Source: Obrimoposthia wandeli (lineage: Eukaryota). From it: 63,099 nucleotides of DNA. Below are positions 6,205 through 45,141 of this stretch, piece after piece (position 1 is the stretch's first letter; every line of letters starts with the position of its first letter). A program made the translations under genes and the position numbers. The notes beneath the pieces are model-generated. The model was not told the DNA's origin, ran no database searches, and saw only the letters and a list, made by a program, of their open reading frames with translations. The stretch covers positions 186,001 through 249,099 of the forward strand of contig CDROCS010001060.1 of NCBI GenBank assembly GCA_977020255.1. The letters run 5' to 3'.

Positions 6205-6256
6205 ATCTCCGACGGGAAAAAAGCCCGTTTCGCCCTTCCGGGCTCATCAGGGAGAT
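6205..6256 (-). ncRNA. Type I hammerhead ribozyme, antisense, in the partial A LTR (6012-6360)
   Basis: Minus strand: AUCUCC CUGAUGA GCCC-GGAA-GGGC GAAAC GGG-CUUUUUU-CCC GUC^GGAGAU. Complete core with stems I, II and III. Confidence 0.92.
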
Positions 6257-7133
6257 GGCTTGTTATTTCTAACTTCGCGGTGGATTCCGCGAAGCCGGAG
6301 ATAACAATAATAAAAAGCCAGGGAAAAGAGGGAAAGATTCCCCTTTCATGTGCCGACGAATAGGTGTGGGACTAACAAACGATTTAAAAGCTTTACGCCT
6401 ACAGAAATGGATGTTATTCAACATTGTTGATTTAGGAATATCTAAAATCATAAAATCAGAACTAAATCACAATCACCCAAATATTGGACTCGCCAACATG
6501 GTGCAGAAATACTTAAATGTAGAAACACAAAAAGGAGTCCACACTAGCATGGAAGATGCAAATCACACCCAAAAAATTTTCATAATGAAGGAGGAAATGT
6601 TGAATAAAGAGTTTGATTTGACCGAGGTGATGAATCCACCATCTAGCGAGAACAACCCAGTTCATCGTTCTCACATAAGACCAGAAATCCGGAGTCCGGT
6701 ACACAAAACTCCCCGATTTTGTTGGATTAAGGTAGTATTATTATTATTTTTATTCTGTTTTCATTCTTGTCTAAATTTTTAACGATTTTTAACCAGACAT
6801 GATTGTGATTAGTAAAACAGTGATCAGTTATAACATGCAAACAACACTAGTTAACAATAGAAACAAGACAAAATAGTTTTACTAATAATTAAGATAAAAA
6901 TTATAATTCTGAGGACAAAGACTTTTATGACCCGGAGGATTGTTGGGAAAATATTATAGCTGTTTATTTTGAAAAAGTAAAAATATAAATATATATATAA
7001 AAAATTAAAAAAAATAAAATAAAAAGTAAATAAGAATTAATTAACTAAAGAATTAATTAAGAACTTTCCTTAATTAGGGAAAAGTTCTATTTAGAAAATA
7101 TGTACTTTGGCATTTTAGTCTCAAGAGTGGTCA

Positions 7134-7185
7134 ATCTCCGACGGGAAAAAAGCCCGTTTCGCCCTGCCGGGCTCATCAGGGAGAT
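7134..7185 (-). ncRNA. Type I hammerhead ribozyme, antisense, in the A 3' LTR
   Basis: Minus strand: AUCUCC CUGAUGA GCCC-GGCA-GGGC GAAAC GGG-CUUUUUU-CCC GUC^GGAGAU. Predicted cut between 7140 and 7139. Confidence 0.93.
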
Positions 7186-7839
7186 GGCTTGTTATCTCTA
7201 ACTTCGCGGTGGATTCCGCGAAGCCAGAGATAACAATAATAAAAAGCCAGGGAAAAGAGGGAAAGATTCCCCTTTCATGTGCCGACGAATATCGTCGACA
7301 TGTGATGTTAGTGTGCGCAAGTGCACAATTCAACACACACACACTCACACAGCAGACATCACTCAACTCACTCACTTACTCACTCAACTTTCATACTCAC
7401 TCACACTCACTGCTCACTCACACACTCACTCGTTTTATCCCTTTATTTCTCCCCATGCACTCTCGTGTGTATGTGTGTTCCCAACTGCTGTTATCTCGAT
7501 ACGGATGTAGATAAATTGATATACATTTTCTCTCTCTGCCCAGATCCGCTGCCATCGGTGTATGTGTGCAGCAGTATTTCTTCTTGCAATTTCTGATTTG
7601 TCTAATCGTTTACCAGTGGAATTGAGGTTGTAGTGCAACTGATTGACTTGTTTTCTATAGTTTGAAGTGGAGCTTTAATTTTTTAAGATTCACATTCGAA
7701 CAAGATAGTCTAATTGGATTAAAAAACAGAAAAAGCTCTGGAAATTGCAACATCACTGTCAGCAGTTTGTTTGGATATTTAAGCTGCACACTGCTTACTA
7801 AAAGGCCAGTGGATAAAATTTGATACAAATATTTTTTGA

Positions 7840-8097
7840 TTAAACAACATTGATTCTAAACAATATTGCTCCTGTATTATTGAAGAATTTTTAGATTAAA
7901 CAACATTGATCCTGTATTATTGAAGAATTTATAAACCAACAACATTGATCCTGTATTATTGAAGAATTTATAAACCAACAACATTGATCCTGTATTATTG
8001 AAGAATTTTTAGATAACACAACATTGATCCTGTATTATTGAAGAATTTTTAGATAACACAACATTGATCCTGTATTATTGAAGAATTTTTAGAAACA
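7840..8097 (+). repeat. Minisatellite of about 39-40 bp (caacattgatcctgtattattgaagaattt...) near the 3' end of the A LTR
   Basis: About 6 units here and about 10 units at 33876-34321. Confidence 0.9.
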
Positions 8098-10119
8098 AAG
8101 TTTTCAGATAATACAATATCATTTGTAATTAGTATTTTGGTATTTTGATATCCCAATTATAATACTTGTACTGATTATCGGAAAGACGGTCACCGATGCA
8201 AAGTCATGCAGAATAAATAAATGTCCAATTTATTTAGTCTAAGCCTGGTCAGATTACTGTTTTAATGGTTTAAGACAATAAGCTTAAATGCATTAATAAT
8301 CAGCCCTAGACCACACCTCACTAGTTTCGAATATTCAAGCCAATAGTGTTCACAATTCTGAACACAGCATAAATCACCAAACATAAATGAAGAAGTCAAT
8401 TCAGTAAAACCTTCATATCAATGAAATCAGATAAGAAATTAAGACCACTAAATACTGTAATTGCCAAAGTCACTCTGTAGGCCTCCAATTGAGAAACCTA
8501 AAGATATTTTTAAGAAAATCCCCAACAAATAAATTCTATGAAACGTAAAATATGGACCTAATAAATACTTGATAAATTCCATAAAATATATTTTACTTGG
8601 TTCTATACACTGCAAGAAATATAGAACGGCTTAATTCATTTTGTGCTAAAGGATGTAAACTCTATTATAAGATAATGTATAGTGAAAACGTTTACTCATA
8701 TATTATTCATTGAAATCGATTGCAATATAACAATAAATTCTTCAAATGACAACAAGTACGTGAACATATAATAATAACTTAAAATATGACGACGTCAATA
8801 TCGAATTTGAACAAAGTTTAATTGGCACAGTGCTAATTTCAATTTTTAAAAGTTTTACATTCATAAAAAGTTTTTTTTTTAATTTTAAATCCAAAAATAT
8901 CATCTGCAATATAACTTATTTTAATGCAATAAATTACAAATGAATGTATTCTTGTGATAAAATTTATAATATATAAATATTAAATCCCACAAATTATTTA
9001 TATGCAATTGTTTTAATCTTCTTCTTATAAACTAAATATTTAAAATTAATTAAATATATTTAAGACAATTGTACGATTTAGTCTAATAAATAACAATAAG
9101 GCACAATTGAGTTTAAATTATAAAATCAAATTTGTGCTATAAAATATATGATTTCAATTGTAAACTATCGTGTTATATTCAAAACAATTAAATTAATTTT
9201 TTTGATATTAATTAAATGTTTCTTTTAAAAGATTTTTTTAATATTTCCAATTCACAATATTAAAATTATTAAGATCGTCTTCATAGTCTTTCAAAGTGTT
9301 TTTTATTTAAAAAAAATAACTTTGTTATATAGAATTTTGTGCCTTACAAAATTTAAGTTTTGTACCAATGCTTTACATATTCATATTTTTGTGCTATATA
9401 TTGTAATCTACTTTGGTCAAAATAATCTATTGAACTTTCATGTCATAATTTAATTTCAAATCAGAAAAAAAAGATTTGCATACTGAATAATTCTTGAGTA
9501 TTAAACAGGTCAATAATATTTATTAATCATTTAGTAAATAAGAAAACAAATCATACAGTTCGACTATTAAATATTTCCTAAATTTAACATATTTACTATC
9601 ACACTTCATGAAAAACTTGCAAACAATATTCAATTAGATTTCATTATCAATGATAAATATGCCTGATTCTTCGATTCAATGAAATTTCCGAAATAATAAA
9701 TTCACTTGAGTGCATTTAAAACATTTTATAAAACATCAGGTTTTCTTATTATTCGCACTACAAACTTATTTCTTTTACTGAATCGATAATCTGTATTGGC
9801 TAAACATTATTAAAAAGTTTATTTTTATTTCTTATCATTCTTAACTTTCAGTAACTCGAAATATTTTATAAACCAATAAAATATCTCAATGCCCAAGACT
9901 ACAAAAAAAATTATATTCACATAAAATTATATTTTGAACAATGTAATTCCGTCACTAATGTATCTTCAATTAGGGTATATGTTAATTACTGACTAATTAT
10001 TTGAACTGGTTTTAAACTAATATTTAAATGGACAATTTAAACTATATTTGTTAATCTATTTTTTTCGATTTATACAGAATATTTTACTATATATTTATAC
10101 AATATATTTTTCTTTTAAT

Positions 10120-11112
10120 ATGAATAATATTTGGAAATATTTAAAAGACCACAATTTAGAAATTGATGTATCGTATGTATCTCCACTATTAAAGTGCTCA
10201 ATGTGTTCCTCAATCCTGAGGCAGCCCATGGGGGCTGTTTGTGGATGCGTGTTCTGTGACGATTGTATCCACAAATATCTCGGGGAAGACTTGAAGCCAT
10301 GCCCGGGTTGTATCATGGATAACATCACAACAGAAATAAGTTACGGCCGCGATATTGTGCAATGTAGGAAGTCCACGAGGGAAATAAACAAGCTTGCTGT
10401 CACTTGCCCACACGATGGATGCGAGGAGAAATGCGAGTTGCTGCAGCTGATGGATCACATTGTATCTTGCCCTGTGTCGAAGTCCGGCTGCATTTTCAGC
10501 AGCATCGGATGTATGAGTGCGCAGTTTAATTCGCTGGAGCTGAACAAGCATCTCGATGAAGGAAGAATGGCGCATTATCGGATTATTGTCGAGACTCTGT
10601 GTCTGCTCAAGAACGGTTTCGAGTCACTGCAGGCGGAGCGAGGAGACGAGTCTGTCATCAGAAATGAGACGGATAAGCTGAAAGAAGACAACACAGAGTT
10701 GAGAGTTGCGTGTGAAGCGAGAGATAACGAATCCAAGGCGGCGATTGATGCGATTGTGGCGGAGGTGGCGGCTCTGAGAACGGAGAATGTTGAGAAGAAG
10801 AAGAAATTAGAGCTGAGAGAGGCAGAAATGAAGAAGGATAAAGAAGAAAGCTGGAGAGAAATTGAACAGTTGCAGAAGAAAGTTGAGAGATTGAGAGAGG
10901 ATAATGGGAAGATGAGTCAAACAATCAAAGAGAACAAAGATAATATCGATGGTGTGCGGAGGGAAATGAAGGAAGATATAAAGAGGGTTACTGAATCAAA
11001 TTCTGAGGATAATACGAAATGGCAGACGGAGATTGACGAGAAGAAATCGGACTTAGAGAAAATGAGAAAGGAAATTGGCGAATTAAGAGCGACTCTGGCG
11101 ACATCTCGGTGA
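10120..11112 (+). CDS. TRAF: TRAF-like protein copy 1: RING, TRAF zinc fingers and coiled coil; MATH domain deleted
   Basis: CSMC...CGCVFCDDC...CPGC RING; CPHDGC...HIVSCP and CIFSSIGC...H zinc fingers; long heptad region. ATG at 10120 (the track's 10048 start is TTG). The ORF ends at a deletion junction relative to copy 2. Confidence 0.8.
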   Translation: MNNIWKYLKDHNLEIDVSYVSPLLKCSMCSSILRQPMGAVCGCVFCDDCIHKYLGEDLKPCPGCIMDNITTEISYGRDIVQCRKSTREINKLAVTCPHDGCEEKCELLQLMDHIVSCPVSKSGCIFSSIGCMSAQFNSLELNKHLDEGRMAHYRIIVETLCLLKNGFESLQAERGDESVIRNETDKLKEDNTELRVACEARDNESKAAIDAIVAEVAALRTENVEKKKKLELREAEMKKDKEESWREIEQLQKKVERLREDNGKMSQTIKENKDNIDGVRREMKEDIKRVTESNSEDNTKWQTEIDEKKSDLEKMRKEIGELRATLATSR

Positions 11113-12339
11113 GTGTTGAGACTTTTATGAGCCGTTTGAACCTCTTTCTCAATCGCGCAATAAAACATTTCAGATATTTCCCATCTTTTTACTCTTCTCG
11201 GATTGTACATCCAAAATGATCAAATTTCCGTCATGTAAATATTTAATTTAATTTCTATTGGTAATTTCATTTCATTTTTCCTTTATGGAGATTTTAATCG
11301 ATTATCTAAATCCATAATAAAATTATTTAATTGAAATTTAAAATGTGCTTGAGAAAATTATTAAATTAATTTGAATTTCTCTTTGATATTTGGAGCTGCA
11401 AAATAAAACGCGATAGAAATATTTGTATGGATGAATGCTCAGATTATCGTACTCGCTGATCATAATTTATCTTTCATTCGATATCCGGGCCTCAGAGGAG
11501 CGTACTGGAAATCTCTCCCAACAATTCACGGCCAATATCGAAAGCATGGACGAGTGCTGATGTCCCCATTGGTTCTGCAGCCTCTGCATGGCCGCTCATT
11601 AATTACATCTCACGATTTATTGAATGCCACTTCGTCATTTCCAACATTTAGCGACATAATCCCACTATGGTCCCCCAATGTCCGTCAGTCCGCACGTCCC
11701 AGACTTAGACCGGCACGACCACACAAATTCCTGTTACATTTCCAGAGGTGTCCACAGATTTTGTCGCGAGGGCTTTCTAAAATTCGATGTTCTCATTGAA
11801 GGAGTATTTTAACTAGATTATAAATGGTGTTATGAAACAGCAGCTCGTACAACTAAAGAGCGTTTATGAGAAGCAAAGTACAAAAGAAGACACTTTCGTG
11901 TCAAACTAAATTGTCCAAATATGGCATAGCATAAAATATTCCGCAAAATATATTTAAAATGGCTTTATTTGATTAATTTAAATTACCTCATTTAAATAGA
12001 GAATATGATGGTCTATTTATTTTATTTTAATAAATTAAAATTTATCTTAAACAAAGATTTATATTTGACTCATTTGTATCTTCCTCTTAAGTGAATTAAA
12101 ATAATTCATTCCCATAATTCTTCTTTACATTTCTAAGTTAGCAAATCAATAGTAAATTTTCAACTAAATCGCAATTTTTAATTAACATGCGAAAGACACC
12201 TAAAAATAAATTTTTTATTTCGAGTTATTTTGGGAAATTCCACATTTATTTGATCTTTTATTGATAAAAGATTGGGAGAAGGACGTCATGAAGTCATAAA
12301 ATTGCAAATGTGTATATGTTACGAATGAAAATGGACAAT

Positions 12340-13222
12340 TGTTGGGCAAGAATCTGAATAAATAAACTTTCAAAATTGTTAAGATGTTAATTGACAATTG
12401 TTGGGCAAGAATCTGAATAACTAAATTTCCAAATATTTTATTATTATATCAACGTGTTAAAGATGCCCGGATTATACAAAATCAAAAGAAAAATTTTCTC
12501 CAAGTGATATTTTTGTCACTGTTATCATAAAATCCAACTGTTTTATACAATAACTTCTTTCGGTTTTTCGATTCTGATCGGTTGTGCCATGTTCACGTCA
12601 GTTAATTGCAAGAAGTATTTTTGGGTAGATTTGCACACCAAAAATATCATAGAACAAAATTTGGGTAATATATAAACACACCCGTGTGAACACACACACA
12701 GAAACATTGTAAAATCGATGTGTCAAGGAAACTATTGAAATAATTGTGCCATGCATTATTGGATTTGGTTTGCCACACTGGAACCGATCGAGGAGGATTG
12801 AACCTGACGTCACGTCCAGAGATAACTCCACTAAATGCCAGGAGATTGTAACGTTTTGACGTTCATCAAAGTGCATCCAGAATTATTATGCACTGTCTGA
12901 GAGTGTGTGTATGCGTGAATGATGATGATGTTGCTGATGATGTCGATGATGATGGTGATATTGCTGATGCTGTTGTTGTTTCTGGATGATGATGATGCCT
13001 CTCCGGATGATGATGTAGGAAGGTGGAGGAGAGAGGCTGCTGTTACTGGGCGGTAAATCTTTGGCGGTCAAAACCGCTTATCTAGCCGCCTCCCTGACGA
13101 GCCTGGCAAGGCGAAACAGGGGTATTATCCTGTCGGAGGCTGATGATGAATACCTCCCTGATTGTGGACACCTCAGTAAAATGTCAATTTAAATTGACAA
13201 AAGTTAATTTTAAATCCCAACA
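12340..13222 (-). repeat. 3' LTR of element C, copy 1 (about 883 bp)
   Basis: TGTTGGG...CCCAACA terminal inverted repeats, preceded on the minus strand by cccccataggag. The left boundary could instead be the second repeat at 12399. Confidence 0.78.
13088..13140 (+). ncRNA. Type I hammerhead ribozyme, antisense to element C
   Basis: GCCUCC CUGACGA GCCU-GGCA-AGGC GAAAC AGG-GGUAUUAU-CCU GUC^GGAGGC. Predicted cut after 13134. Confidence 0.93.
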
Positions 13223-13556
13223 CTCCTATGGGGGTAAACAAAGTCAGATCTCTGACGTTTTAAAAACAAAAATAGAAATAATGTCCCGTTTAGTATATAG
13301 CTGTCCAACGTGACTTCCACAAAATAAATTACTCGAGTCTGTTAATGTAAAGATAAAATATAAAATTTTGATTTTACACTTTTCATATCCACAAGCAATA
13401 AGACATTTAATGAATGATGCATAGTAAAATATTTTACTACTCTAAATGCTGTCCTCAGAATCAGTGGAGCAAAGGTCCATGACCTCAGGCAGGCTAGTAT
13501 TGGTAATGCTGGGGAGAGAGACCGTCAGTCCACATTCTTCTATAAGTTCTTGCTCT

Positions 13557-14528
13557 CTATGGAGGAAAATGTTTCGGGTCCATTGTGTGTACGAGGCTAG
13601 AGTGGGTATCCTTTTGTATTTCCTTATTGAAATACCACGAGACCATTCGAGCGAGTCCAGCTTGTTCTCTACGATTGATCTCTAATCGAATAGTATGTGT
13701 TGCTCCTAGATCCACCGTCTGCGAAAAATCGTTTTTCTGTAGTTCTAAAACCTTGAGGTAATTGGTTATTCCCGTTCCTACAAAAATGTTGTCTTTTAGC
13801 AAAGACTGAACGCGTTGTAACACTTCAACAGAATCAGGTTGGTTTCTTAACTTACGTTCGTTGAGGCCTTTTATTCTTGTCATATAATTCCTGATTCTGT
13901 CTCTGCTATTGCATTTTGTATCCAAAACGATTTGTCCACTTTTGTTCATTATAGTAATGCTGGCTAGGGTGGGTTGTTTGTTCATTTTTACTACCATTTC
14001 ACAATCGACAAAAAATATTTGAGGATTGTTGTGATATTAAAATGGCAGACTTGAACGGGACTAGGTCGCACAATTTGTTCTATGAATAATATGTTATGTC
14101 CACCCGACAAACGAATCATCAAATCGGGAGTTATTTAATGTAAGAGTGGTTTTGTAGGAGAATGCTTGCTTTTCTTGTGTTTTAAAAATCCACAGCCTTT
14201 TGCTACGTGAATCTCAATGTCCGTGCAAGTAGGTAAAAATTTCATCAACTCAAACAGTCTGTTCTGTTGGCTTTTTTCTAGTTTTGTTGAGAATTATGCT
14301 CTGTCTAGGGGTGTCTCTTAATTTGATGCTATTTGGAAGCTGGGTCTGATTGTCAAAAATCTTTATTCCGTAATGGTTATGGAAATACCTTGTTCCAAAC
14401 TACCTTATTTTTCCATAAAGGAACTTAGCCATTTTTGGACGTTGTTCTGCTAACTAGACTGACTTCTCTCTCTTACTCTGCGGCACAACCTGCCAGTTCA
14501 AATAAGGATTTGTACTTGTGGGTTCCAT
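13557..14528 (-). pseudogene. DEDDh exonuclease of element C, degraded
   Basis: FFVDCEMVVKMNKQPTLASITI. The upstream region translates to AKFLYGKIR*FGTRYFHNHYGIKIFDNQT, homologous to A's AKFLYQKMRQFNIAYFRNNGGRKMFSNQT. Stops, frameshifts and altered ExoII/III acids are present. Confidence 0.8.
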
Positions 14529-14907
14529 CTGTAGGGTATACAGATATAGTAAAAAAAAAATTGATTTTACATGCAAATATAAAATTTGTCAAATGTTTAT
14601 AAAATGAAATGTTCGTGTCAGATTTTTTGTCTCTTTTTGTTTATCAAAAGTCTGTAAATCATTTTATTTTTATGATGTAACAAGCTCAATCAAACAGGTA
14701 TATAAATAAGATATAATTTTTTCATTCTTTACTACATATTCTTGTTACTTCTATTATCAATATCAATATATACATATCTATATAAATATATTCGTTTTTA
14801 TTTATTCCTAATTTTTATTATGACACTTTAACTAAAGTTAATGAATATTAATACCCATTCATAAACATATTTCCTTTCCAAATCATGCCATAAGCTCAAA
14901 CTAATTC

Positions 14908-15189
14908 TCAATTTTCTTTTAATTTATATTTTAATTTACTCACTGTGGATTTACTAATTTTCACACCGAAATCATCACTTTCTCCCGGTTGAAATCCCAT
15001 TAAACGATTAATTACTGATCTCAATGATACAAGAGAGTTTAACGCTTCTATGAGTCGTCGTACTAATAATTCCTGATTTGTTTGGCTATGTTCTAATCTT
15101 TCATTTGCAACGTCAAAAGCATTATTCATTCGCTCACATTCCATTTCCTTGTCTTTCAAATGCGATCGCAGATTTATATTTTCTATCAA
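14908..15189 (-). CDS. Coiled-coil accessory protein of element C
   Basis: Homologous to 4079-4447 and at the same position. Also present at 43046-43252 and about 54170-54375. Confidence 0.6.
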   Translation of the reverse strand: MIENINLRSHLKDKEMECERMNNAFDVANERLEHSQTNQELLVRRLIEALNSLVSLRSVINRLMGFQPGESDDFGVKISKSTVSKLKYKLKEN

Positions 15190-15727
15190 TAATTTATTTT
15201 CCCATTTCTTCTGTCTCTTATATCTTCTTTTATTATTTTGTACTATTTTTTAATTTCTCATTTCTAAAATGTTAATAATTTTTGAGTTCATTTTTACTAT
15301 TTTCAATTTAAACTAAACACATACGCACTTTTCTTCATTAACATTATAATTACTTTATTTTATGATTAGTTTTTATTTTAGTATGTCAATTCGTGTTTTT
15401 ACTTGTATGAAAATTTTATGAAGATTTTTCTCTTTTCTTCTTATTATTCTCAATTATTGTATTTATTGATATGTTAGATGAGTTTGAAGAGCTAGGTATG
15501 ATAGATGTTATAAATGGCCCAGGAGGTTTACAATATTTTGTCCGATAATGTTTTTTGAAAATTGTGTTATTTTTTACTTTAATGACTTTCCATGTTATTT
15601 TTATGATTAATGTAAAGATTTCAATTATTATGATTGTTACAAAAATTTTCTTGTTATTTATATTTTTTGAGTATTTTTGTTTATTAAAGTGTATTTTTAG
15701 ACTTTCATTAAATGATTTATATGGTAT

Positions 15728-17106
15728 TGTTGGAATATTAATTAAAAGAATTAATTAATTTTTAAGTCAATTTAAATTGACATTTAATATTTATCTAAAA
15801 TGCCCACAATTAGGGAGGAATTCAAATTCAGCCTCCGACGGGGTGGTCCCGTTTCGCCTTGCCAGGCTCATCAGGAAGGCGGCTTGATAACAAGATTAAA
15901 CACAATGATTTTTCCGCCCAGCAATAGCAGCAGATGCGGCGGCGGTCTGCCCTTTCTCGGCCAGCGACAAGTCTGGTCCAGCTCCTCCACCATCCTTCCC
16001 CGTATTCCCCGTCATCCTAATCGGCAGTCTGAACAGCGACATTTCCCGGCTGCACATGATGACACTATCGTGCACAGACACCGATTCGTCTAGCCCAGAA
16101 CGAGATGGCCCATTCAACAGACTAGTATCCCAACACATACATCATTGTCTCCCACAAAATTTATCTTCCTTCCGACTGACAATTTTCTCTTTCTTTCTCT
16201 CCCAGTTTGTATGGTGACATCTGTATTTATGTGTGTGTACAAAATTTGTGATATCGATTTTTGACGATACATTTTGTGTGTGTGTGCGAGCCGGGGATTT
16301 CAGCAACAACAGCATCATCAGCAACATCATCATCATCGGCATCGTCAATATCATCAGCATTTGTGCCAGTGTGCTGTCTTTCGCACAGACACACACCGCA
16401 GTCTATCAATCTCCTTCTATGCCACAGCTGCAACATGCACTTTCCGCGATACTGCGATCCACCGTATCTCCCTACTTATCAATCTCCCTTTTTCCACACA
16501 GACCATCCTAACCAGCAGCATGTCAGTGTCAGGATGACCACCATCGCACTGGGTCAGTTTCGAAGTCCCCTCCTTCTGTAGATTCATCTCCGTATGTCAA
16601 GTGATTGAGATCTCCACAGTCATCATTGGTTATTGGAAGCGAATTTCAGTTTTGTCTGTCGTTCAGTGTGCGTGTGTTCAATCAAGGAATTTAACTATAT
16701 GTGTGTGCTGTGATTTTCGCTGTGGTTAGAGGAGACAGTGTTTGTCTGCGTGTTTGATCCCGATCATCGATCGGTAAAATTCTGCACAGCAGTTTTGTTT
16801 TCCTCTGACATATAAACAGCATGATTTCTGTGAAGCTTAACACACAAAAATATACAACATTTCAACCTGTTAAAAAATTGAATCATTATTCAAAAGATAT
16901 TTTCCCTGGAACTTATTAACAATTAAACAAAGACAAGTATTTGAACCTATCCAAAAGTTATTTTCGCTGGAACTTATTAACAATTAAATTAAAGACAAGT
17001 ATTTGAACCTATTCAAAAGATATTTTCCATGGAACTTATTAACAATTAAATTAAAGACAAGTATTTGAACCTATTCAAAAGATATTTTCCCTGGAACTTT
17101 ATAACA
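15728..17106 (+). repeat. 5' LTR of element B copy 1 (about 1379 bp)
   Basis: TGTT...AACA ends, followed by AT then TGG (PBS). Homologous to 43820-45141 and about 56146-57573. TATA-like catataaacag near 16810 and ~58-60-bp repeats at about 16890-17106. Confidence 0.88.
15831..15880 (-). ncRNA. Type I hammerhead ribozyme, antisense, in the B 5' LTR
   Basis: Minus strand: GCCUUC CUGAUGA GCCU-GGCA-AGGC GAAAC GGG-ACCAC-CCC GUC^GGAGGC. Confidence 0.92.
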
Positions 17107-17108
17107 AT

Positions 17109-17121
17109 TGGTGAGCTCGAC
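17109..17121 (+). promoter_or_regulatory. Primer binding site, probably tRNA-Trp-like
   Basis: TGGTGAGCTCGAC lies 2 nt after the LTR end and matches the avian retroviral Trp PBS TGGTGACCCCGAC at 11/13. Identical at 45144-45156. Confidence 0.65.
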
Positions 17122-33506: not shown

Positions 33507-36342
33507 TATGTGTGTTCCTTACTGCTGTTATCTCGATACATATGCAGATAAATTGATATACATTTTCCCTCTCTGCCCAGATCCGCTGCCATCGGTTTAT
33601 GTGTGCAGCAGTATTTCTTCTTGCAATTTATGATTTGTCTGATCGTTCACCAGTGGAATTGAGGTTGTAGTGCAACTGATTGACTTGTTTTCTATAGTCT
33701 GAAGTGGAGCTTTAATTTTTTAAGAATCACATTCGAACAAGATAGTCTAATTGGATTAAAAAACAGAAAAAGCTCTGGAAATTGCAACATCACTGTCAGC
33801 AGTTTGTTTGGATATTTAAGCTGCACACTGCTTACTAAAAGGCCAGTGGATAAAATTTGATACAAATATTTTTTGATTAAACAACATTGATTCTAAACAA
33901 TATTGCTCCTGTATTATTGAAGAATTTTTAGATTAAACAACATTGATTCTAAACAATATTGCTCCAGTATTATTGAAGAATTTTTAGATTAAACAACATT
34001 GATTCTAAACAATATTGCTCCTGTATTATTGAAGAATTTATAAACCAACAACATTGATCCTGTATTATTGAAGAATTTTTAGATTAAACAACATTGATCC
34101 TGTATTATTGAAGAATTTATAAACCAACAACATTGATCTTGTATTATTGAAGAATTTTTAGATAACACAACATTGATCCTGTATTATTGAAGAATTTATA
34201 AACCAACAACATTGATCCTGTATTATTGAAGAATTTATAAACCAACAACATTGATCCTGTATTATTGAAGAACTTTTAGAAACAACATTGATCCTGTATT
34301 ATTGAGGAATTTTTAGAAACAAAGTTTTCAGATAATACAATATCATTTGTAATTAGTATTTTGGTATTTTGATATCCCAATTATAATACTTGTACTGATT
34401 ATCGGAAAGACGGTCACCGATGCAAAGTCATGCAGAATAAATAAATGTCCAATTTATTTAGTCTAAGCCTGGTCAGATTACTGTTTTAATGGTTTAAGAC
34501 AATAAGCTTAAATGCATTAATAATCAGCCCTAGACCACACCTCACTAGTTTCGAATATTCAAGCCAATAGTGTTCACAATTCTGAACACAGCATAAATCA
34601 CCAAACATAAATGAAGAAGTCAATTCAGTAAAACCTTCATATCAATGAAATCAGATAAGAAATTAAGACCACTAAATACTGTAATTGCCAAAGTCACTCT
34701 GTAGGCCTCCAATTGAGAAACCTAAAGATATTTTTAAGAAAATCCCCAACAAATAAATTCTATGAAACGTAAAATATGGACCTAATAAATACTTGATAAA
34801 TTCCATAAAATATATTTTACTTGGTTCTATACACTGCAAGAAATATAGAACGGCTTAATTCATTTTGTGCTAAAGGATGTAAACTCTATTATAAGATAAT
34901 GTATAGTGAAAACGTTTACTCATATATTATTCATTGAAATCGATTGCAATATAACAATAAATTCTTCAAATGACAACAAGTACGTGAACATATAATAATA
35001 ACTTAAAATATGACGACGTCAATATCGAATTTGAACAAAGTTTAATTGGCACAGTGCTAATTTCAATTTTTAAAAGTTTTACATTCATAAAAAGTTTTTT
35101 TTTTAATTTTAAATCCAAAAATATCATCTGCAATATAACTTATTTTAATGCAATAAATTACAAATGAATGTATTCTTGTGATAAAATTTATAATATATAA
35201 ATATTAAATCCCACAAATTATTTATATGCAATTGTTTTAATCTTCTTCTTATAAACTAAATATTTAAAATTAATTAAATATATTTAAGACAATTGTACGA
35301 TTTAGTCTAATAAATAACAATAAGGCACAATTGAGTTTAAATTATAAAATCAAATTTGTGCTATAAAATATATGATTTCAATTGTAAACTATCGTGTTAT
35401 ATTCAAAACAATTAAATTAATTTTTTTGATATTAATTAAATGTTTCTTTTAAAAGATTTTTTTAATATTTCCAATTCACAATATTAAAATTATTAAGATC
35501 GTCTTCATAGTCTTTCAAAGTGTTTTTTATTTAAAAAAATAACTTTGTTATATAGAATTTTGTGCCTTACAAAATTTAAGTTTTGTACCAATGCTTTACA
35601 TATTCATATTTTTGTGCTATATATTGTAATCTACTTTGGTCAAAATAATCTATTGAACTTTCATGTCATAATTTAATTTCAAATCAGAAAAAAAAGATTT
35701 GCATACTGAATAATTCTTGAGTATTAAACAGGTCAATAATATTTATTAATCATTTAGTAAATAAGAAAACAAATCATACAGTTCGACTATTAAATATTTC
35801 CTAAATTTAACATATTTACTATCACACTTCATGAAAAACTTGCAAACAATATTCAATTAGATTTCATTATCAATGATAAATATGCCTGATTCTTCGATTC
35901 AATGAAATTTCCGAAATAATAAATTCACTTGAGTGCATTTAAAACATTTTATAAAACATCAGGTTTTCTTATTATTCGCACTACAAACTTATTTCTTTTA
36001 CTGAATCGATAATCTGTATTGGCTAAACATTATTAAAAAGTTTATTTTTATTTCTTATCATTCTTAACTTTCAGTAACTCGAAATATTTTATAAACCAAT
36101 AAAATATCTCAATGCCCAAGACTACAAAAAAAATTATATTCACATAAAATTATATTTTGAACAATGTAATTCCGTCACTAATGTATCTTCAATTAGGGTA
36201 TATGTTAATTACTGACTAATTATTTGAACTGGTTTTAAACTAATATTTAAATGGACAATTTAAACTATATTTGTTAATCTATTTTTTTCGATTTATACAG
36301 AATATTTTACTATATATTTATACAATATATTTTTCTTTTAAT

Positions 36343-39111
36343 ATGAATAATATTTGGAAATATTTAAAAGACCACAATTTAGAAATTGATGTATCGTATG
36401 TATCTCCACTATTAAAGTGCTCAATGTGTTCCTCAATCCTGAGGCAGCCCATGGGGGCTGTTTGTGGATGCGTGTTCTGTGACGATTGTATCTACAAATA
36501 TCTCGGGGAAGACTTGAAGCCATGCCCGGGTTGTATCATGGATAACATCACAACAGAAATAAGTTACGGCCGCGATATTGTGCAATGTAGGAAGTCCACG
36601 AGGGAAATAAACAAGCTTGCTGTCACTTGCCCACACGATGGATGCGAGGAGAAATGCGAGTTGCTGCAGCTGATGGATCACATTGTATCTTGTCCTGTGT
36701 CGAAGTCCGGCTGCATTTTCAGCAGCATCGGATGTATGAGTGCGCAGTTTAATTCGCTGGAGCTGAACAAGCATCTCGATGAAGGAAGAATGGCGCATTA
36801 TCGGATTATTGTCGAGACTCTGTGTCTGCTCAAGAACGGTTTCGAGTCACTGCAGGCGGAGCGAGGAGACGAGTCTGTCATAAGAAATGAGACGGATAAG
36901 CTGAAAGAAGACCACACAGAGTTGAGAGTTGCGTATGAAGCGAGAGATAACGAGTCCAAGGCGGCGATTGATGCGATTGTGGCGGATGTGGCGGCTCTGA
37001 GAGCGGAGAATGTGGAGACGAAGAAGAAATTAGAGCTGCGAGAGGCAGAAATGAAGAAGGATAAAGAAGAATTCTGGGGAGAAATTGAACAGTTGCAGAA
37101 GAAAGTTGAGAGATTGAGAGAGGATAATGGGAAGATGAGACAAACAATCAAAGAGAACAAAGTGTGCGGAGGGAAATGAAGGAAGATATAAAGAGGGTTA
37201 CTGAATCAAAGTCTGAGGATAATACGAAATGGCAGACGAAGATTGACGGGAAGAAATCGGACTCAGAGAAAATGAGAAAGGAAATTGGCGAATTAAGAGC
37301 GACTCTGGCGACAAAGGCCGATATGAAGACGGCGCTCGATGAATATTCGCGAGAAGTGGCTCAATTGAAGAAGGAAATAGACCGAGTTAAAGTAATTTTC
37401 CCCTCGCTCTATTTATGACGCATTGCAGGAGGAAGTGGCGCAGCAGAAGAAAGATTCAGAGAAGGAGAGAGCGACGACGACGAGCGGGGTGGAGAAGACA
37501 GCTGGAGCGGAGGTAATTGATGTTCTGCAGCAAAATCGGTGACGAATGGAGCCACTTTCACGGGGAATCGGCGATGCTGAGATGGGATCGATGAAGGGGC
37601 AACATTGGGAACTGAGGTCGAGGGAGTTAATCAATATAAGTGTTGTAAATTGTCATTGTCAGGTGCGAGTGGGATTATTACGCCAGCTACTCATTATTTT
37701 ATCATCACAGTGATCCTCCCTCATTTTAGTGTGGAACAATTTTGTGTGTGGGGTTATTTTATTTCCACAATATCTTCATTTATCCGAGAGTGATCAGCAG
37801 TGTCAAGTTTGGGCATTGGTTGGCATTATCTGAGTGCGGCCTGTTCTGTTAGAAATGTCGAATTGGGGTTTCTCTTTCTTGTCTATCCTGGATTTGAGAT
37901 TCTTGTTGTTGTATGTGACCTCTTTTTCATTTCCCTTCATTGTGGAGGTTTTGTTGCTTTGTTTAATCGTATTATTTAGTCCGTGGGTTCCTTCCTCGAA
38001 GTTGTGAATGTTGTGTGATTTACAACGTCTTGTGAGTGTTTGAGTGTGGGTTTGAATGTGTGATGTTTCTTTTGGAGCCATTCCCTGTTTGTTTTATGTT
38101 CCCATATTCTTTTTGATTTTGCTAAAGAATGTGGCTCTGTTGAGTGTAGTGAGGACGTCGCCTATGAGGTGAACTTCAGCGTGTGTTGTTGAGTCAAGTT
38201 TGCAGAAGTCGCTCCTCGAGGTAGAATTCGTCTTTACTCGACGTTGCTCAGTTGTAGCCCAACATTTGATGGCGATGGTGCTTGTTTGTTACTATGCGCT
38301 GTCTGGCTCCGTTTTCTGAGTTTGAGCTTCTGATTGGGAAATTGTTCTTTTGTTTTCTGCCGATTGTTTCTGCAGTGTGTTCTCATTGTGGTTGTTTCAG
38401 CTCCGGCTAATGTCTGATTGTTGATTTTGCGCCTGTTTGCTGGGTCCTGTGCAGTGTTGGTGCTGATGTATTGGTGTGGAGAATTGTTATAATTCCTGCT
38501 GTGTTTGGTGTGTGTAATGTTTTCGAGTATTCCCTTTTCTGGGCTGTGTATGTGCGGCAAATTGTCCGGGTAGTAAATATCGGCGGTGGCTTTGGGAAGA
38601 GGTAAATCGGTGTCGCGATTGAGCGGACGCAGGGATTATGGTGCTGTGTGGAATGTGGAATGAGCAGCTGTTTGTGCGTGCGCAGGGCGGAGTGGGGGCG
38701 ACATCGCTTCATCGAGCACCGGCGACCGCGGACCAGCACATTTGGACTGCAACACGAGTCAGAGAGAGCAGCAGTGATCAATGGAGCAGCACATTCCTCC
38801 TCCGAGGATACCACATGCAACTGAGAGTGGTGCTGAGGCTGGTTGGTGTCACCTCTATCTGGACAGATCTCTACCTCGTGGGATCATCAGAAGATGCCGC
38901 ACTGCACTGGCCAATGAGGCTGCCTATGCGACTGCGGGTGACGGACCCCGACTCCGGGACGGAGATTTGGTCTAAGTCGTGGACTGGCAATGGTCAGAGA
39001 CCGAAGAAGAATGGCCGAGTCTGCATTTGTTCTTCTCCTCATTTCAGTCTCACAGGACACGCAGGAGCCATGACGAAGGACTCTGTCGTCATCACTGTGG
39101 AGATTGTGTGA
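36343..39111 (+). pseudogene. TRAF: TRAF-like gene copy 2: RING, zinc fingers, coiled coil and MATH domain; 13-bp frameshift deletion and about 1 kb of intervening sequence
   Basis: Near-identical to copy 1 at the N-terminus. It lacks ataatatcgatgg near 37161 and has a probable 37-nt intron at 37391-37427. ORF 38638-39111 has MATH features HIW...STF...GYHMQLRV...EDAALHWPMR...DSVVITVEI. Confidence 0.8.
37640..38600 (-). mobile_element. Possible degenerate non-LTR retrotransposon 3' fragment inside TRAF copy 2
   Basis: Strong A/C skew on the minus strand and weak LINE-like remnants across frameshifts (RTYTA..GILE; W...KKHHTFKPTL...SRKEPT..IRL). Boundaries approximate. Confidence 0.35.
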
Positions 39112-40420
39112 GCCTTTCCCCACTTCTGACTTCCCTTTCCTCTGGCTCAGTGTGATCGACATTTATCATATTTACTTTCACTTTGCGTATTCCATCTCGG
39201 TGAGTGTGGAGACTTTTATGAGCAGTTTGAACCTCTTTCTCAATCGTGCAATAAAACATTTCAAATATTTCCCATCTTTTTACTCCTCTCGGATTTGTAC
39301 ATCCAAAATGATCAAATTTCCGTCATGTAAATATTTAATTTAATTTCTATTGGTAATTTCATTTCATTTTTCCTTTATATTGATTTTAATCGATTATCTA
39401 AATCCATAATAAAATTATTTAATTGAAATTTAAAATGTGCTCGAGAAAATTATTAAATTAATTTGAATTTCTCTTTGATATTTGAAGCTGCAAAATAAAA
39501 TGCGATAGAAATATTTGTATGGATGAATGCTCAGATTATCGTACTCGCTGATCATAATTTATCTCCCATTCGATATCCGGGCCTCAGAGGAGCGTACTGG
39601 AAATCTCTCCCAACAATTCACGGCCAATATCGAAAGCATGGACGAGTGCTGATGTCCTCATTGGTTCTGCAGCCTCAGCATGGCCGCTCATTAATTACAT
39701 CTCACGATCTATTGAATGCCATTTCCAACATTTAGCGACATAATCCCACTATGATCCCCCAATGTCCGTCAGTCCGCCCGTCCCAGACTTAGATCGGCAC
39801 GACCACACAAATTCCTGTTACATTTCCAGAGGTGTCCACAGATTTTGTCGCGAGGGCTTTCTAAAATGTGATGTTCTCATTGAAGGAGTATATTAACTAG
39901 ATTACAAATGGTATGAAACAGCAGCTCGTACAACTAAATAGTGTTTATGAGAAGTAAAGTGCAAAAGAAGACATTTTCGTGTCAAACTAAATTGTCCAAA
40001 TATGGCATAGCATAAAATATTCCGCAAAATATATTTAAAATGGCTTTATTTGATTAATTTAAATTACCTCATTTAAATAGAGAATATGACGGTCCATTTA
40101 TTTTATTTTAATAAATTAAAATTTATCTTAAACAAAGATTTATATTTGACTCATTTGTATCTTCTTCTTAAGTGAATTAAAATAATTCATTCACATAATT
40201 CTTCTTTACATTTCTAAGTTAGCAAATCAATGGTAAATTTTCAACTAAATCGCAATTTTTAATTAACATGCGAAAGACACCTAAAAATAAATATTTTATT
40301 TCGAGTTATTTTGGGAAATTCCACATTTATTTGATCTTTTATTGATAAAAGATTGGGAGAAGGACGTCATGAAGTCATAAAATTGCAAATGTGTATATGT
40401 TATGAATGAAAATGGACAAT

Positions 40421-41300
40421 TGTTGGGCAAGAATCTGAATAAATAAACTTTCAAAATTGTTAAGATGTTAATTGACAATTGTTGGGCAAGAATCTGAATA
40501 ACTAAATTTCCAAATATTTTATTATTATATCAACGTGTTAAAGATGCCCGGATTACACAAAATCAAAAGAAAAATTTTCTCCAAGTGATATTTTTGTCAC
40601 TGTTATCATAAAATCCAACTGTTTTATACATTAACTTCTTTCGGTTTTTCGATTCTGATCGGTTGTGCCATGTTCACGTCAGTTAATTGCAAGAAGTATT
40701 TGTGGGTAGATTTGCACACCAAAAATATCATAGAACAAAATTTGGGTAATATACAAACACACCCGTGTGAACACACACACACAAACATTGTAAAATCGAT
40801 GTGTCAAGGAAACTACTGAAATAATTGTGCCATGCATTATTGGATTTGGTTTGCCACACTGGAACCGATCGAGGAGGATTGAACCTGACGTCACATCCAG
40901 AGATAACTCCACTAAATGTCAGGAGATTGTAACGTTTTGACGTTCATCAAAGTGCATTCAGAATGCACTGTCCGAGAGTGTGTGTATGCGTGAATGATGA
41001 TGATGACGTTGCTGATGATGTCGATGATGATGGTGATATTGCTGATGCTGTTGTTGTTTCTGGATGATGATGATGCCTCTCCGGATGACGATGTAGGAAG
41101 GTGGAGGAGAGAGGCTGCTGTTACTGGGCGGTAAATCTTTGGCGATCAAAACCGCTTATCTAGCCGCCTCCCTGACGAGCCTGGCAAGGCGAAACGGGGT
41201 TATTACCCTGTCGGAGGCTGATAATGAATACCTCCCTGATTGTGGACACCTCAGTAAAATGTCAATTTAAATTGACAAAAGTTAATTTTAAATCCCAACA
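40421..41300 (-). repeat. 3' LTR of element C, copy 2
   Basis: TGTTGGG...CCCAACA ends; near-identical to 12340-13222. Confidence 0.78.
41166..41218 (+). ncRNA. Type I hammerhead ribozyme, antisense to element C copy 2
   Basis: GCCUCC CUGACGA GCCU-GGCA-AGGC GAAAC GGGG-UUAUUA-CCCU GUC^GGAGGC. Confidence 0.92.
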
Positions 41301-43819
41301 ATCCTATGGGGGTAAACAAAGTTAGATCTCTGACGTTTTAAAAACAAAAATAAAAATAATGTCCCGTTTAGTATATAGCTGTCCAACGTGACTTCCACAA
41401 AAATAAATTACTCGAGTCTGTTAATGTAAAGATAAAATATAAAATTTTGATTTTACACTTTTCATATCCACAAGCAATAAGACATTTAATGAATGATGCA
41501 TAGTAAAATATTTTACTACTCTAAATGCTGTCCTCATAATCAGTTGAGCAAAGGTCCATGACCTCAGGAAGGCTAGTATTGGCAATGCAGGGGAGAGAGA
41601 CCGTCAGTCCACATTCTTCTATAAGTTCTTGCTCTCTATGGAGGAAAATGTTTCGGGTCCATTGTGTGTATGAGGCTAGAGTGGGTATCCTTTTGTATTT
41701 CCTTATTGAAATACCACGAGACCATTCGAGCGAGTCCAGCTTGTTCTCTACGATTGATCTCTAATCGAATAGTATGTGTTGCTCCTAGATCCACCGTCTG
41801 CGAAAAATCGTTTTTCTGTAGTCCTAAAACCTTGAGGTTGTTGGTTATTCCCGTTCCTACGAAAATGTTGTCTTTTAGCAAGGACTGAACGCGTTGTAAC
41901 ACTTCGACAGAATCAGGTTGGTTTCTTAACTTACGTTCGTTGAGGCCTTTTATTCTTGTCACATAATTCCTGATTCTGTCTCTGCTATTGCATTTTGTAT
42001 CCAAAACGATTTGTCCAATTTTGTTCATTATAGTAATGCTGGCTAGGGTGGGTTGTTTGTTCATTTTTACTACCATTTCACAATCGACAAAAAATATTTG
42101 AGGATTGTTGTGATATTCAAATGGCAGACTTGAACGGGACTAGGTCGCACAATTTGTTCTATGAATAATATGTTATGTCCACCCGACAAACAAATCATCA
42201 AATCGGGAGTTATTTGATGTCTCATCAACCGGTAAGAGTGGTTTTGTAGGAGAATGCTTGCTTTTCTTGTGTTTTAAAAATCCACAGCCTTTTGCTACGT
42301 GAATCTCAATGTCCGTGCAAGTAGATAAAAATTTCATCAACTCAAACAGTCTGTTCTGTTGGCTTTTTGCTATTTTTGTTGAGAATTATGCTCTGTCTAG
42401 GGGTGTCTCTTAATTTGATGCTATTTGAAAGCTGGGTCTGATTGTCAAAAATCTTTATTCCGTAATGGTTATGGAAATACCTTGTTCCAAACTACCTTAT
42501 TTTTCCATAAAGGAACTTAGCCATTTTTGGACGTTATTCTGCTAACTAGACTGACTTCTCTCTCTTACCCTGCGGCACAACCTGCCAGTTTAAATAAGGA
42601 TTTGTACTTGTGGGTTCCATCTGTAGGGTATACAGATATAGTAAAAAAAAATTGATTTTACATGCAAATATAAAATTTGTCAATGTTTATAAAATGAAAT
42701 GTTCGTGTCAAATTTTTTTTTCTCTTTTTGTTTATCAAAAGTCTGTAAATCATTTTAGTTTTTTGATGTAACAAGCTCAATCAAACAGGTATATAAATAA
42801 GATATAATTTTTTCATTCTTTACTACATATTCTTGTTACATCTATTATCAATATCAATATATACATATCTATATAAATATATTCGTTTTTATTTATTCCT
42901 AATTTTTATTATGACACTTTAACTAAAGTTAATGAATATTAATACCCATTCATAAACATATTTCCTTTCCAAATCATGCCATAAGCTCAAACTAATTCTC
43001 AATTTTCTTTTAATTTATATTTTAATTTACTCACTGTGGATTTTACTAATTTTCACACCCGAAATCATCACTTTCTCCCGGTTGAAATCCCATTAAACGA
43101 TTAATTACTGATCTCAATGATACAAGAGAGTTTAACGCTTCTCTGAGTCGTCGTACTAATAATTCCTGATTTGTTTGGCTATGTTCTAATCTTCCATTTG
43201 CAACGTCAAAAGCATTATTCATTCGCTCACATTCCATTTCCTTGTCTTTCAAATGCGATCGCAGATTTATATTTTCTTACAATAATTTATTTTCCCATTT
43301 CTTCTGTCTCTTATATCTTCTTTTATTATTTTGTACTATTTTTTAATTTCTCATTTCTAAAATGTTAATAAGTTTTGAGTTCATTTTTACTATTTTCAAT
43401 TTAAACTAAACACATACGCACTTTTCTTCATTAACATTATAATTACTTTATTTTATGATTAGCTTTTATTTTAGTATGTCAATTCGTGTTTTTACTTGTA
43501 TGAAAATTTTATAAAGATTTTTCTCTTTTCTTCTTATTATTCTCAATTATTGTATTTATTGATATGTTAGATGAGTTTGAAGAGCTAGGTATGATAGATG
43601 TTATAAATGGCCCAGGAGGTTTCTACAATTTGTCCGATAATGTTTTTTGAAAATTGTGTTATTTTTTACTTTAATGACTTTCCATGTTATTTTTATGATT
43701 AATGTAAAGATTTCAATTATTATGATTGTTACAAAAATTTTCTTGTTATTTATATTTTTTGAGTATTTTTGTTTATTAAAGTGTATTTTTAGACTTTCAT
43801 TAAATGATTTATATGGTAT

Positions 43820-45141
43820 TGTTGGGATATTAATTAAAAGAATTAATTGTTAATTTTTTAAGTCAATTTAAATTGACATTTAATATTTATCCTAAAATGC
43901 CCACAATTAGGGAGGAGAATTCAAATTCAGCCTCCGACGAGGTGGTCCCGTTTCACCCTTTTTACCGGAAGCTCATCAAGAAGGCGGCTTGATAACCAGA
44001 TTCAACACAACGATTTTCCAGCACAGCAATAGCAGCAGACGCGGCGGCGGTCTGCCCTTTCTCAGCCAGCGACAAGTCTGATCCAGCTCCTCCACCATCC
44101 TTCCCCCGTATTCCCCGTCATCCTAATCGGCAGGCTGAACAGCGGTATTTCTGACTAAACATGATGACACTATCGTGCACAGACCCCGATTCGTCTAGCC
44201 CAGAACGAGATGGCCCATTCAACAGACTAGTATCCCAACACATACATCATTGTCTCCCACAAAATTTATCTTCCTTCCGACTGACAATTTTCTCTTTCTT
44301 TCTCTCCCAGTTTGTATGGTGACATCTGTATTTATGTGTGTGTACAAAATTTGTGATATCACGATTTTGAGCGATACATTTTGTGTGTGTGTACGAGCAG
44401 GGATTTCAGCAATAACAACAGCATCATCAGCAACATCATCATCATCGGCATCGTCAATATCATCAGCATTTGTGCCAGTGTGCTGTCTTTCGCACAGACA
44501 CACATTGCAGTCTATCAATCTATGCCACAGCTGCAACATGCACTTTCCGCGATACTGCGATCCACCGTATCTCCCTACTTATCAATCTCCCTCTTTCCAC
44601 ACAGACCATCCTAACCAGCAGCATGTCAGTGTCAGGATGACCACCATCGCACTGGGTCAGTTTCAAAGTCCCCTCCTTCTGTAGATTCATCTCCGTATGT
44701 CAAGTGATTGAGATCTCCACAGTCATCATTGGTTATTGGAAGCGAATTTCAGTTTTGTCTGTCGTTCAGTGTGCGTGTGTTCAATCAAGGAATTTAACTA
44801 TATGTGTGTGCTGTGATTTTCGCTGTGGTTAGAGGAGACAGTGTTTGTCTGCGTGTTTGATCATCGATCGGTAAAATTATGCACAGCAGTTTTGTTTTCC
44901 TCTGACATATAAACAGAATGATTTCTGTGAAGCTTAACACACAAAAATATACAACATTTCAACCTGTTAAAAAATTGAATTATTATTCAAAATATATTTT
45001 CTCTGGAACTTATTAACAATTAAACAAAAACAAGTATTTGAACCTATTCAAAAGATATTTTCCATGGAACTTATTAACAATTAAATCAAAGACAAGTATT
45101 TGAACCTATTCAAAAGATATTTTCCCTGGAATTTTATAACA
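43820..45141 (+). repeat. 5' LTR of element B copy 2
   Basis: TGTTGGG...TTTATAACA followed by AT TGGTGAGCTCGAC. Confidence 0.88.
43930..43985 (-). ncRNA. Degenerate hammerhead ribozyme in the B copy 2 5' LTR
   Basis: Minus strand reads UUGAUGA instead of CUGAUGA and stem II is disrupted. Probably inactive, or a sequencing error. Confidence 0.55.

Follow-up and report, generated by a model that had tools for sequence, protein, structure and literature searches.

Long terminal repeats (LTRs) of Ty3/Gypsy retrotransposons in the genome of Obrimoposthia wandeli contain, on the strand opposite to the genes of these elements, what is very probably a genuine and selected type I hammerhead ribozyme. 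The ribozyme was found in a 63,099-nt stretch of contig CDROCS010001060.1 (assembly GCA_977020255.1), which in its full length is referred to as the window and in which all coordinates are numbered. We searched the window and 100 shuffled versions of it with the core pattern CTGANGA-N8-20-GAAA-N8-38-GTC and obtained eight matches in the window compared to 0.62 expected, with none of the 100 shuffles reaching eight. Seven of these matches are complete type I hammerheads, consisting of the core elements CUGANGA, GAAA and GUC and three helices. They correspond to the seven complete-core copies that an earlier, sequence-only reading of this DNA had placed at 6205, 7134, 15831, 32343 and 32778 on the minus strand and at 13088 and 41166 on the plus strand, and pattern search and covariance model agree on all of them. 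The eighth match (16263-16321) is a chance hit in a CAT/CAG microsatellite, which forms no helices and was missed by the covariance model. This model, R1, was made from the seven copies and gave scores of 81-90 bits for these copies and of 50.3 bits for a damaged one at 43926-43990(-), previously noted as a degenerate copy at 43930. An alignment of LTR starts, A1, showed one more site, a ninth and badly decayed one at about 56242-56293(-), which R1 had missed.

The minimum-energy fold of six of the seven copies is a three-way junction, in which an open stem I of 6 bp is followed by CUGANGA, a stem II of 4 bp closed by a GGCA loop, GAA, a stem III of 5 bp that is likewise loop-closed, and C17. 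The exception is the copy at 32339-32398, in which one base of loop II is deleted. RNAalifold, applied to the alignment alone, returned the identical hammerhead structure. With regard to the type I core, C3 U4 G5 A6 N7 G8 A9, the pair G10.1-C11.1 and G12 A13 A14 are invariant in the seven copies, and the further core positions A15.1-U16.1 and H17 are present and invariant as well. In local scans with the Rfam model RF00163 (Hammerhead_1), one copy each of two LTR variants, A (7134) and B2 (13088), aligned end to end with 32.4 and 22.1 bits, respectively.

The copies belong to five LTR variants, termed A, B1a, B1b, B2 and X. The hammerhead of LTR A, which is the 3' LTR of an element that we call element A, is located at 7130-7190(-) with the core match at 7140-7179(-), scores 89.7 bits with R1, has the three-way junction as its minimum-energy fold and is predicted to be cut after C17, at 7140/7139. 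Two more copies of family A are found at 6201-6261(-) in a truncated LTR (core 6211-6250, loop II GGAA, predicted cut 6211/6210) and at 32339-32398(-) in a duplicated copy of the LTR A insertion (core 32349-32387, predicted cut 32349/32348). LTR B1a, a 5' LTR upstream of gag-env, carries the copy at 15827-15885(-) with a U-G wobble in stem I (core 15837-15874, predicted cut 15837/15836), and the solo LTR B1b carries the copy at 32774-32832(-) (core 32784-32821, predicted cut 32784/32783). On the plus strand, the copy at 13084-13144(+) (core 13094-13134, predicted cut 13134/13135) lies in LTR B2, the 3' LTR of a minus-strand element, and its duplicate at 41162-41222(+) (core 41172-41212, predicted cut 41212/41213). 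The damaged copy at 43926-43990(-), supported by R1 and by alignments, is the duplicate of the B1a copy and shows a change of C3 to U, an insertion in stem II and several GC-to-AT changes. In the remnant at 56242-56293(-), which lies in LTR X and was recognised from A1 and its sequence, the CUGANGA, GAAA and GUC blocks are all damaged.

Comparison of the copies shows that the structure has been maintained while the sequence changed. Across the 15 base pairs of the seven copies, all 105 cells hold standard pairs, compared to 36-52% in a control in which the partners were slid by 1-3 columns. Compensatory double changes were found in four of the 15 pairs and no pair is broken, in agreement with the earlier claim of covariation in all three stems. 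Two of them are in stem I (G-C and C-G in the B LTRs versus A-U and U-A in LTR A), one is in stem II (U-A versus C-G), and one, which depends on a single copy, is in stem III, where the G-C pair of the other copies is A-U in the copy at 13088 and an intermediate G-U in its duplicate at 41166. The copies at 7134 (A) and 13088 (B2) differ by nine substitutions in 45 positions, none of which falls on the 14 core positions or breaks a pair, and random placement of nine substitutions matches this pattern with a simulated P of 6e-6 for this one inter-family comparison. G-U pairs are present in three of the seven copies and correspond to C-A mismatches on the opposite strand; since they are tolerated, the strand that encodes the hammerhead is the constrained one. 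Beyond the ribozyme, the LTRs have diverged, as had been stated before: between LTR A and the B LTRs, the flanks are 10-45% identical compared to 60-83% for the ribozyme block, which is the sole well-conserved island between them and, with about 60% G+C, is embedded in sequence of about 30% G+C. All 14 core positions are invariant in the seven copies.

The seven copies represent fewer insertion events. Self-comparison revealed that a block of about 15 kb at 7857-22282 is duplicated at 34085-50171 with 96-98% identity. The segments 25646-27774 and 60969-63099 are also paired in this large duplication, and the first copy lacks about 7.4 kb that are kept in the second (approximately 50171-57600, with protease, reverse transcriptase (RT), RNase H, integrase, exonuclease and LTR X). 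The repeated block may have arisen by segmental duplication or may be a giant composite element that is present twice. In addition, a 930-bp tandem duplication (5431-6362 and 6361-7291, 98.6% identity), which comprises the 3' end of an exonuclease open reading frame (ORF) and the first 351 bp of LTR A, puts two same-strand hammerheads 929 nt apart and gave rise to the truncated LTR at 6012-6362. The copies at 13088 and 41166 are one insertion in the duplicated block, the same applies to those at 15831 and 43930, and the copies at 6205, 7134 and 32343 all derive from a single LTR A insertion. The insertions thus number five, with an intact ribozyme in all but LTR X, and the earlier count of seven copies, all of which are present, comes down to four intact-ribozyme insertions. 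The pol and exonuclease regions are 83-84% identical between the variants, which makes the supposed four autonomous-type Gypsy families LTR variants of one lineage; the elements are of a protein-coding type, as proposed, but stops or frameshifts interrupt all of their copies in the window. Within the two block copies of LTR B1a (15755-16070 versus 43850-44170), the differences are clustered in the G+C-rich start of the LTR and are mainly GC-to-AT changes and indels. These changes ruin the ribozyme in the second copy, and several hundred flanking bases are virtually identical.

LTR A (6941-7484(+)) starts with TGTTGGG right after a GGAGGA purine run behind the exonuclease ORF; its 3' end is not fixed and no target duplication was recognised for it, and besides the truncated LTR a further copy is located at 32150-32679. 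The solo LTR B1b (32680-33506(+), 827 bp) has TG...CA ends and is flanked by a 4-bp target-site duplication, TATG. It sits inside LTR A, and the corresponding empty site is kept at 7470-7473 in the other block copy, so that the LTRs can be regarded as genuine. LTR B1a (15728-16822(+), 3' end approximate; duplicate starting at 43820) is followed by tandem repeats and then by gag. The 5' part of LTR B2 (12900-13222(-)) begins at 13222 with TGTTGGG, which follows ATAGGAG and a fragment of the exonuclease ORF, and the old and decayed LTR X (56149-57143(+)) comes after the exonuclease region 53709-55578. The starts of LTRs A, B2 and X are thus all immediately preceded by an exonuclease ORF and a short run of purines. 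Aligned stretches of the 5' LTR B1a and the 3' LTR X, which may belong to one insertion, are about 70-80% identical; a clear pair of 5' and 3' LTRs of one and the same element is missing from the window.

In these LTRs, the ribozyme is located 79-250 nt inside the 5' end, compared to about 90-200 nt given earlier, and the predicted cleavage site is 87-198 nt from the LTR 5' edge. The ribozyme-bearing 5' part of the LTR is probably U3. In all five LTR variants, the ribozyme is opposite to the ORFs (gag, env, protease, RT, RNase H, integrase and exonuclease) as well as to the purine run, which confirms that it is always antisense to the genes. The orientation had been deduced from primer-binding site (PBS), purine tract and ORFs; the ORFs support it, short purine runs (GGAGGA and ATAGGAG) come before LTR starts, and no tRNA-complementary PBS was recognised after LTR B1a. 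The LTR starts of the B variants also contain, about 30-50 nt inside, an AT-rich palindrome (GTCAATTTAAATTGAC or a close variant; 13180-13200, 15770-15790 and 32715-32735). Directly 5' of the family A hammerhead, a perfect 20-bp hairpin (7191-7237(-)) abuts stem I, with a z-score of -5.5 in a 141-nt context and weak miRNA-precursor-like Rfam matches. A minisatellite with units of 39-40 nt is located just past LTR A (7820-8100 and 33900-34330), with a copy number that differs between the blocks, and LTR B1a is separated from gag by tandem repeats of 61 and 68 nt (16887-17109 and 17547-17807).

Judging from their coding content, the carriers are one env- and exonuclease-bearing lineage of Ty3/Gypsy elements of the Burro-like type. 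Read across the copies, the gene order is gag, env, aspartic protease, RT, RNase H, integrase and an ISG20/REXO4-like exonuclease. A gag fragment (46850-47167(+), Pfam Retrotrans_gag; copy in the other block at 18955-19293) is followed by a class III G-like fusion glycoprotein that runs in frame into the aspartic protease (48928-50925(+), Monjiviricetes_fusion 7.9e-45). The ORFs concerned are 48928-50034 and 50074-50925, the latter with the protease, and the copy in the other block is at 20488-21792(+); a stretch that matches 555-636 of the 653 profile positions of Monjiviricetes_fusion is fused to gag-asp_proteas. The RT, RNase H and integrase region of a plus-strand element (51297-53713(+), Pfam RT_RNaseH on 52086-52562) is 82.7% identical to 1-2418. 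In element A, RT and RNase H of Ty3/Gypsy type are split into two ORFs (79-1445(+), Pfam RVT_1 5.5e-35, RT_RNaseH_2 and RT_RNaseH). Between integrase and 3' LTR, element A carries a DEDDh 3'-5' exonuclease ORF (4632-5801(+), Pfam RNase_T) with matches in the PDB to ISG20 (5.5e-10), ISG20L2 and SDN1. The minus-strand element that ends in LTR B2 has a fragment of this ORF (13557-13997(-), Pfam RNase_T 1.6e-6), and a further site is 53709-55578(+). The DxE, D and HxxxxD motifs of the exonuclease align with those of ISG20; SDN1, which was matched too, is a plant nuclease that degrades small RNAs. A study of rotifers reports exonucleases of the DEDDy type only in LTR elements.

Relatives of these elements were found by HMMER with the RT ORF, at 60-70% identity, on six public contigs (L121-L126). 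L121-L124 encode env, protease, RT, RNase H and integrase, and L125 and L126 encode pol and downstream accessory ORFs. L123 has an RNase_T ORF after the integrase (exonuclease site 9547-11622), and L125 has pol, another ORF and RNase_T (8000-9331), the latter homologous to the exonuclease of element A (2e-25). The order protease, RT, RNase H, integrase was thus found by Pfam in the window and in intact relatives, and the latter share the order pol, exonuclease, LTR. When the exonuclease and env ORFs were used as queries in word-based searches of proteins, each gave one distant match in an uninformative context. Other ORFs were seen beside these genes. The duplicated block contains a TRAF-like ORF with RING, TRAF zinc finger and coiled coil (10048-11112 and 36271-37179(+)), and its second copy alone contains an ORF with a MATH domain (38638-39111(+)), the first copy lacking the segment that corresponds to 37313-39193. 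Burro elements have been reported with MATH_TRAF_C, and the TRAF/MATH ORFs may be part of a transposon, not a host gene. The region 36-39 kb has an unusually high G+C content of 43.5% and a strong GC skew. Further Gypsy fragments, with integrase and a 406-aa ORF, are present on the minus strand beside the plus-strand elements (22275-24149(-) and 57777-59245); no similarity of the 406-aa ORF to the ORF at the same position of L125 was detectable.

Since a ribozyme of this kind acts solely on its encoding strand, the RNA that it cuts would have to be an antisense transcript of the element, and selection for cutting antisense transcripts is the natural reading of the sequence. The best explanation overall, to which we give about an even chance, is that a real antisense type I hammerhead in Gypsy LTRs acts on antisense RNA. 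According to this explanation, the antisense strand of the LTR would be transcribed from a divergent promoter in the LTR or through read-in from nested or flanking elements, and the hammerhead would fold co-transcriptionally and cut after C17, leaving a 2',3'-cyclic phosphate on the upstream and a 5'-OH on the downstream product. Read in antisense direction, the ribozyme lies within the final 79-250 nt of the LTR. Antisense transcripts starting in or beyond the 3' LTR would therefore be decapped just before the coding region and their body would begin with a 5'-OH, whereas those on their way out of the element through the 5' LTR would be cut there and lose their tail. Antisense RNA would thus become unstable overall and, as a result, there would be less double-stranded RNA, small-RNA silencing and transcriptional interference. 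A genome full of nested and oppositely oriented elements would be the setting for such a gatekeeper, and it would be the element, not the host, on which selection acts. We put forward this specific antisense-destabilising gatekeeper function tentatively, holding it to be nearly as probable as not. It is doubtful, albeit conceivable, that the U3 hammerhead as gatekeeper and the adjacent upstream ISG20/SDN1-like exonuclease make up a two-part counter-defence at the RNA level against silencing by small RNAs.

A number of observations weigh against a ribozyme that protects the element from its antisense RNA. Antisense transcription and cleavage are both steps that we infer, and a single cut would not obviously stop the production of small RNAs from the remaining antisense transcript. 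The intact-ribozyme insertions are only four and all lie within one window. The decay of the ribozyme in the second copy of B1a and the remnant in LTR X imply that inserted copies are unprotected; any selection would work on replicating lineages rather than on such copies. At gathering thresholds, Rfam gave no match in the whole window, both local scores of RF00163 are below its gathering threshold of 34 bits, and a whole-window scan by E-value returned just partial type III matches. The Rfam check suggested by the sequence-only reading is thus negative at the cut-off, with end-to-end alignments that score below it, and routine annotation misses copies that score in this range. Weak Rfam matches to snoRNA and miRNA models were discarded as they correspond to a TGATGA-rich microsatellite and to the LTR A hairpin.

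Folding in longer context is unfavourable, too, in that competing helices are predicted for the B LTRs. In these LTRs, a CCUCC 13-17 nt downstream of the ribozyme can pair with the 3' strand of stem I and, according to this pairing model, may trap the 3' product after the predicted cleavage or compete with the active fold. The GCC 5' of stem I is complementary to the GGC of loop II; both are invariant, which leaves no covariation possible for this contact, and the minimum-energy fold of LTR A pairs AGCC at a place other than loop II. Finally, the hammerhead is absent in all six related contigs, of which L121 and L125 probably end before the LTR; five of the related loci that lack it have an RT identity of 64-70%. 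L123 has a clearly homologous LTR start with the purine run, TGTGTTGGGAATTATT and a similar AT-rich palindrome, and no ribozyme. The trait is thus confined to a sub-lineage rather than shared by the whole clade, and the wider clade does not need it. The palindrome of L123 that resembles GTCAATTTAAATTGAC is recognisable at 11858-11875.

Some of these points would suit a neutral passenger, i.e. a hammerhead that was captured once, in reverse, into an ancestral LTR, for instance from a Penelope-like element or an animal retrozyme, and that persists by recent common descent or LTR gene conversion although it is useless to the Gypsy element. Such elements of animals are rich in hammerheads, related elements elsewhere lack one, single copies decay fast, and few insertions with an intact ribozyme are at hand. 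We nevertheless consider a passenger unlikely, as it would have to account for four compensatory pairs around an untouched core with the above P value, for flanks of A and B at near-random identity beside a ribozyme that is not, and for the survival of a G+C-rich island under an apparently AT-biased mutation pattern. Moreover, neither a Penelope-like element nor any other hammerhead was found in the window. The hammerhead likeness could, on the other hand, be incidental to an element that works on the sense strand or as DNA, such as a protein-binding site in U3 or a 3'-UTR (untranslated region) element. The helices are complementary on either strand, the region is untranslated and 3' in the sense genomic RNA, and the 20-bp hairpin adjoins the ribozyme of LTR A, but the invariance of all 14 unpaired or junction positions of the hammerhead core, the C-A mismatches that the G-U pairs of three copies would create on the sense strand and the end-to-end alignment of the Rfam type I model make this explanation highly improbable.

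A use of the ribozyme in the manner of retrozymes would leave the hammerhead functional and change its role: the LTR hammerheads would cut long antisense RNA into units, which a host ligase would circularise to give antisense circular RNAs acting as decoys or regulators. Plant retrozymes make circular RNAs via paired LTR hammerheads, same-strand pairs occur here 929 nt (6205/7134) and 435 nt (32343/32778) apart, and once a B ribozyme has been cleaved, its 3' product can be refolded by the CCUCC that lies downstream. The close pairs are accidents of duplication and nesting, though, the unit from LTR to LTR would exceed 10 kb compared to 170-1000 nt for known ribozyme-derived circles, and the antisense RNA would carry the complement of the PBS and of the polypurine tract (PPT), so that the usual reverse transcription would be impossible. 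We therefore regard this role as quite improbable and retain cleavage of antisense RNA as the preferred explanation.

The ribozyme itself is a type I hammerhead; what is new with regard to the searchable literature is its antisense placement in the LTRs of a protein-coding type of Gypsy element. Plant LTR retrozymes resemble the present case in that they have a hammerhead in each LTR, Ty3/Gypsy-type ends and 4-bp target duplications. They differ in that they are non-coding, non-autonomous and only 1-1.5 kb long, compared to a protein-coding type of more than 10 kb here, and in that their type III hammerhead is located on the PBS/PPT strand, where the sense RNA is cut and circularised, compared to a type I hammerhead on the opposite strand. 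Neither of the two hallmarks of LTR retrozymes, a small non-coding element and a type III sense hammerhead, was thus found. Penelope-like elements, including Terminons and Athena, are animal retroelements with type I hammerheads in terminal repeats as well; type I or minimal hammerheads are found in their pseudo-LTRs or 3' ends, and accessory exonuclease ORFs are common to LTR elements and the Athena elements of rotifers. However, Penelope-like elements have a telomerase-like RT with or without GIY-YIG and pseudo-LTRs that arise by tandem insertion, as opposed to true LTRs, and their ribozymes are on the sense strand and in many cases minimal, with a stem III of 1-2 bp compared to 5 bp in the antisense copies described here. 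The elements of the window have RNase H and integrase of Gypsy type, and no GIY-YIG domain was found among the scanned ORFs of at least 110 aa.

Metazoan non-LTR retrozymes and the Sm-alpha repeats of schistosomes are AT-rich animal repeats with a canonical type I hammerhead, too, but they consist of tandem or SINE-like (short interspersed element-like) units of 170-400 nt without LTR, PBS or PPT and produce small circular RNAs, compared to one hammerhead per LTR of a large coding element. In R2, L1Tc, RTE and baggins, autonomous retrotransposons process their transcript by self-cleavage, as is predicted here. These HDV-like (hepatitis delta virus-like) ribozymes at the 5' ends of non-LTR elements belong to another class and are encoded on the sense strand, where they release the RNA of the element itself from a co-transcript. 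Closest in coding content are the Burro or GAG-ENV-POL errantivirus-like Gypsy elements of planarians, nematodes and bryozoans, which share the mononegavirus-like class III env in frame between gag and protease as well as TRAF/MATH sequences nearby. The descriptions searched mention neither a ribozyme nor an ISG20-like exonuclease, and the elements here look smaller, with about 13 kb. Together with a G+C content of about 30%, the Burro-like architecture and the TRAF/MATH association may point to a planarian source.

Close relatives of the ribozyme were not found elsewhere. A scan of metagenomes with a pattern of core plus stem II yielded 120 loci, all of which are generic hammerheads of prokaryote/phage type with an unrelated stem I and therefore uninformative, and a more specific pattern for the ribozyme had no matches in genome contigs and none in viral contigs. 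In a literature search in which many subscription-journal papers were missing, we found no report of a hammerhead in the LTR of a coding Gypsy element or antisense to its element, so that the novelty claimed by the sequence-only reading stands for the searchable literature. The retroelement ribozymes described in the papers searched (R2, L1Tc, schistosome SINE-like, Penelope-like elements and retrozymes) act on the sense RNA, which they free or circularise. If the proposed counter-defence is true, the hammerhead would be the first retroelement ribozyme aimed at the element's own antisense RNA and not at genome processing. If the finding as a whole holds, autonomous LTR retrotransposons would join the classes of ribozyme-bearing elements, and ribozymes would have acquired a new use in the control of antisense transcription or the evasion of RNA silencing. 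Similar cases, scoring below the thresholds, may be hidden in other genomes.

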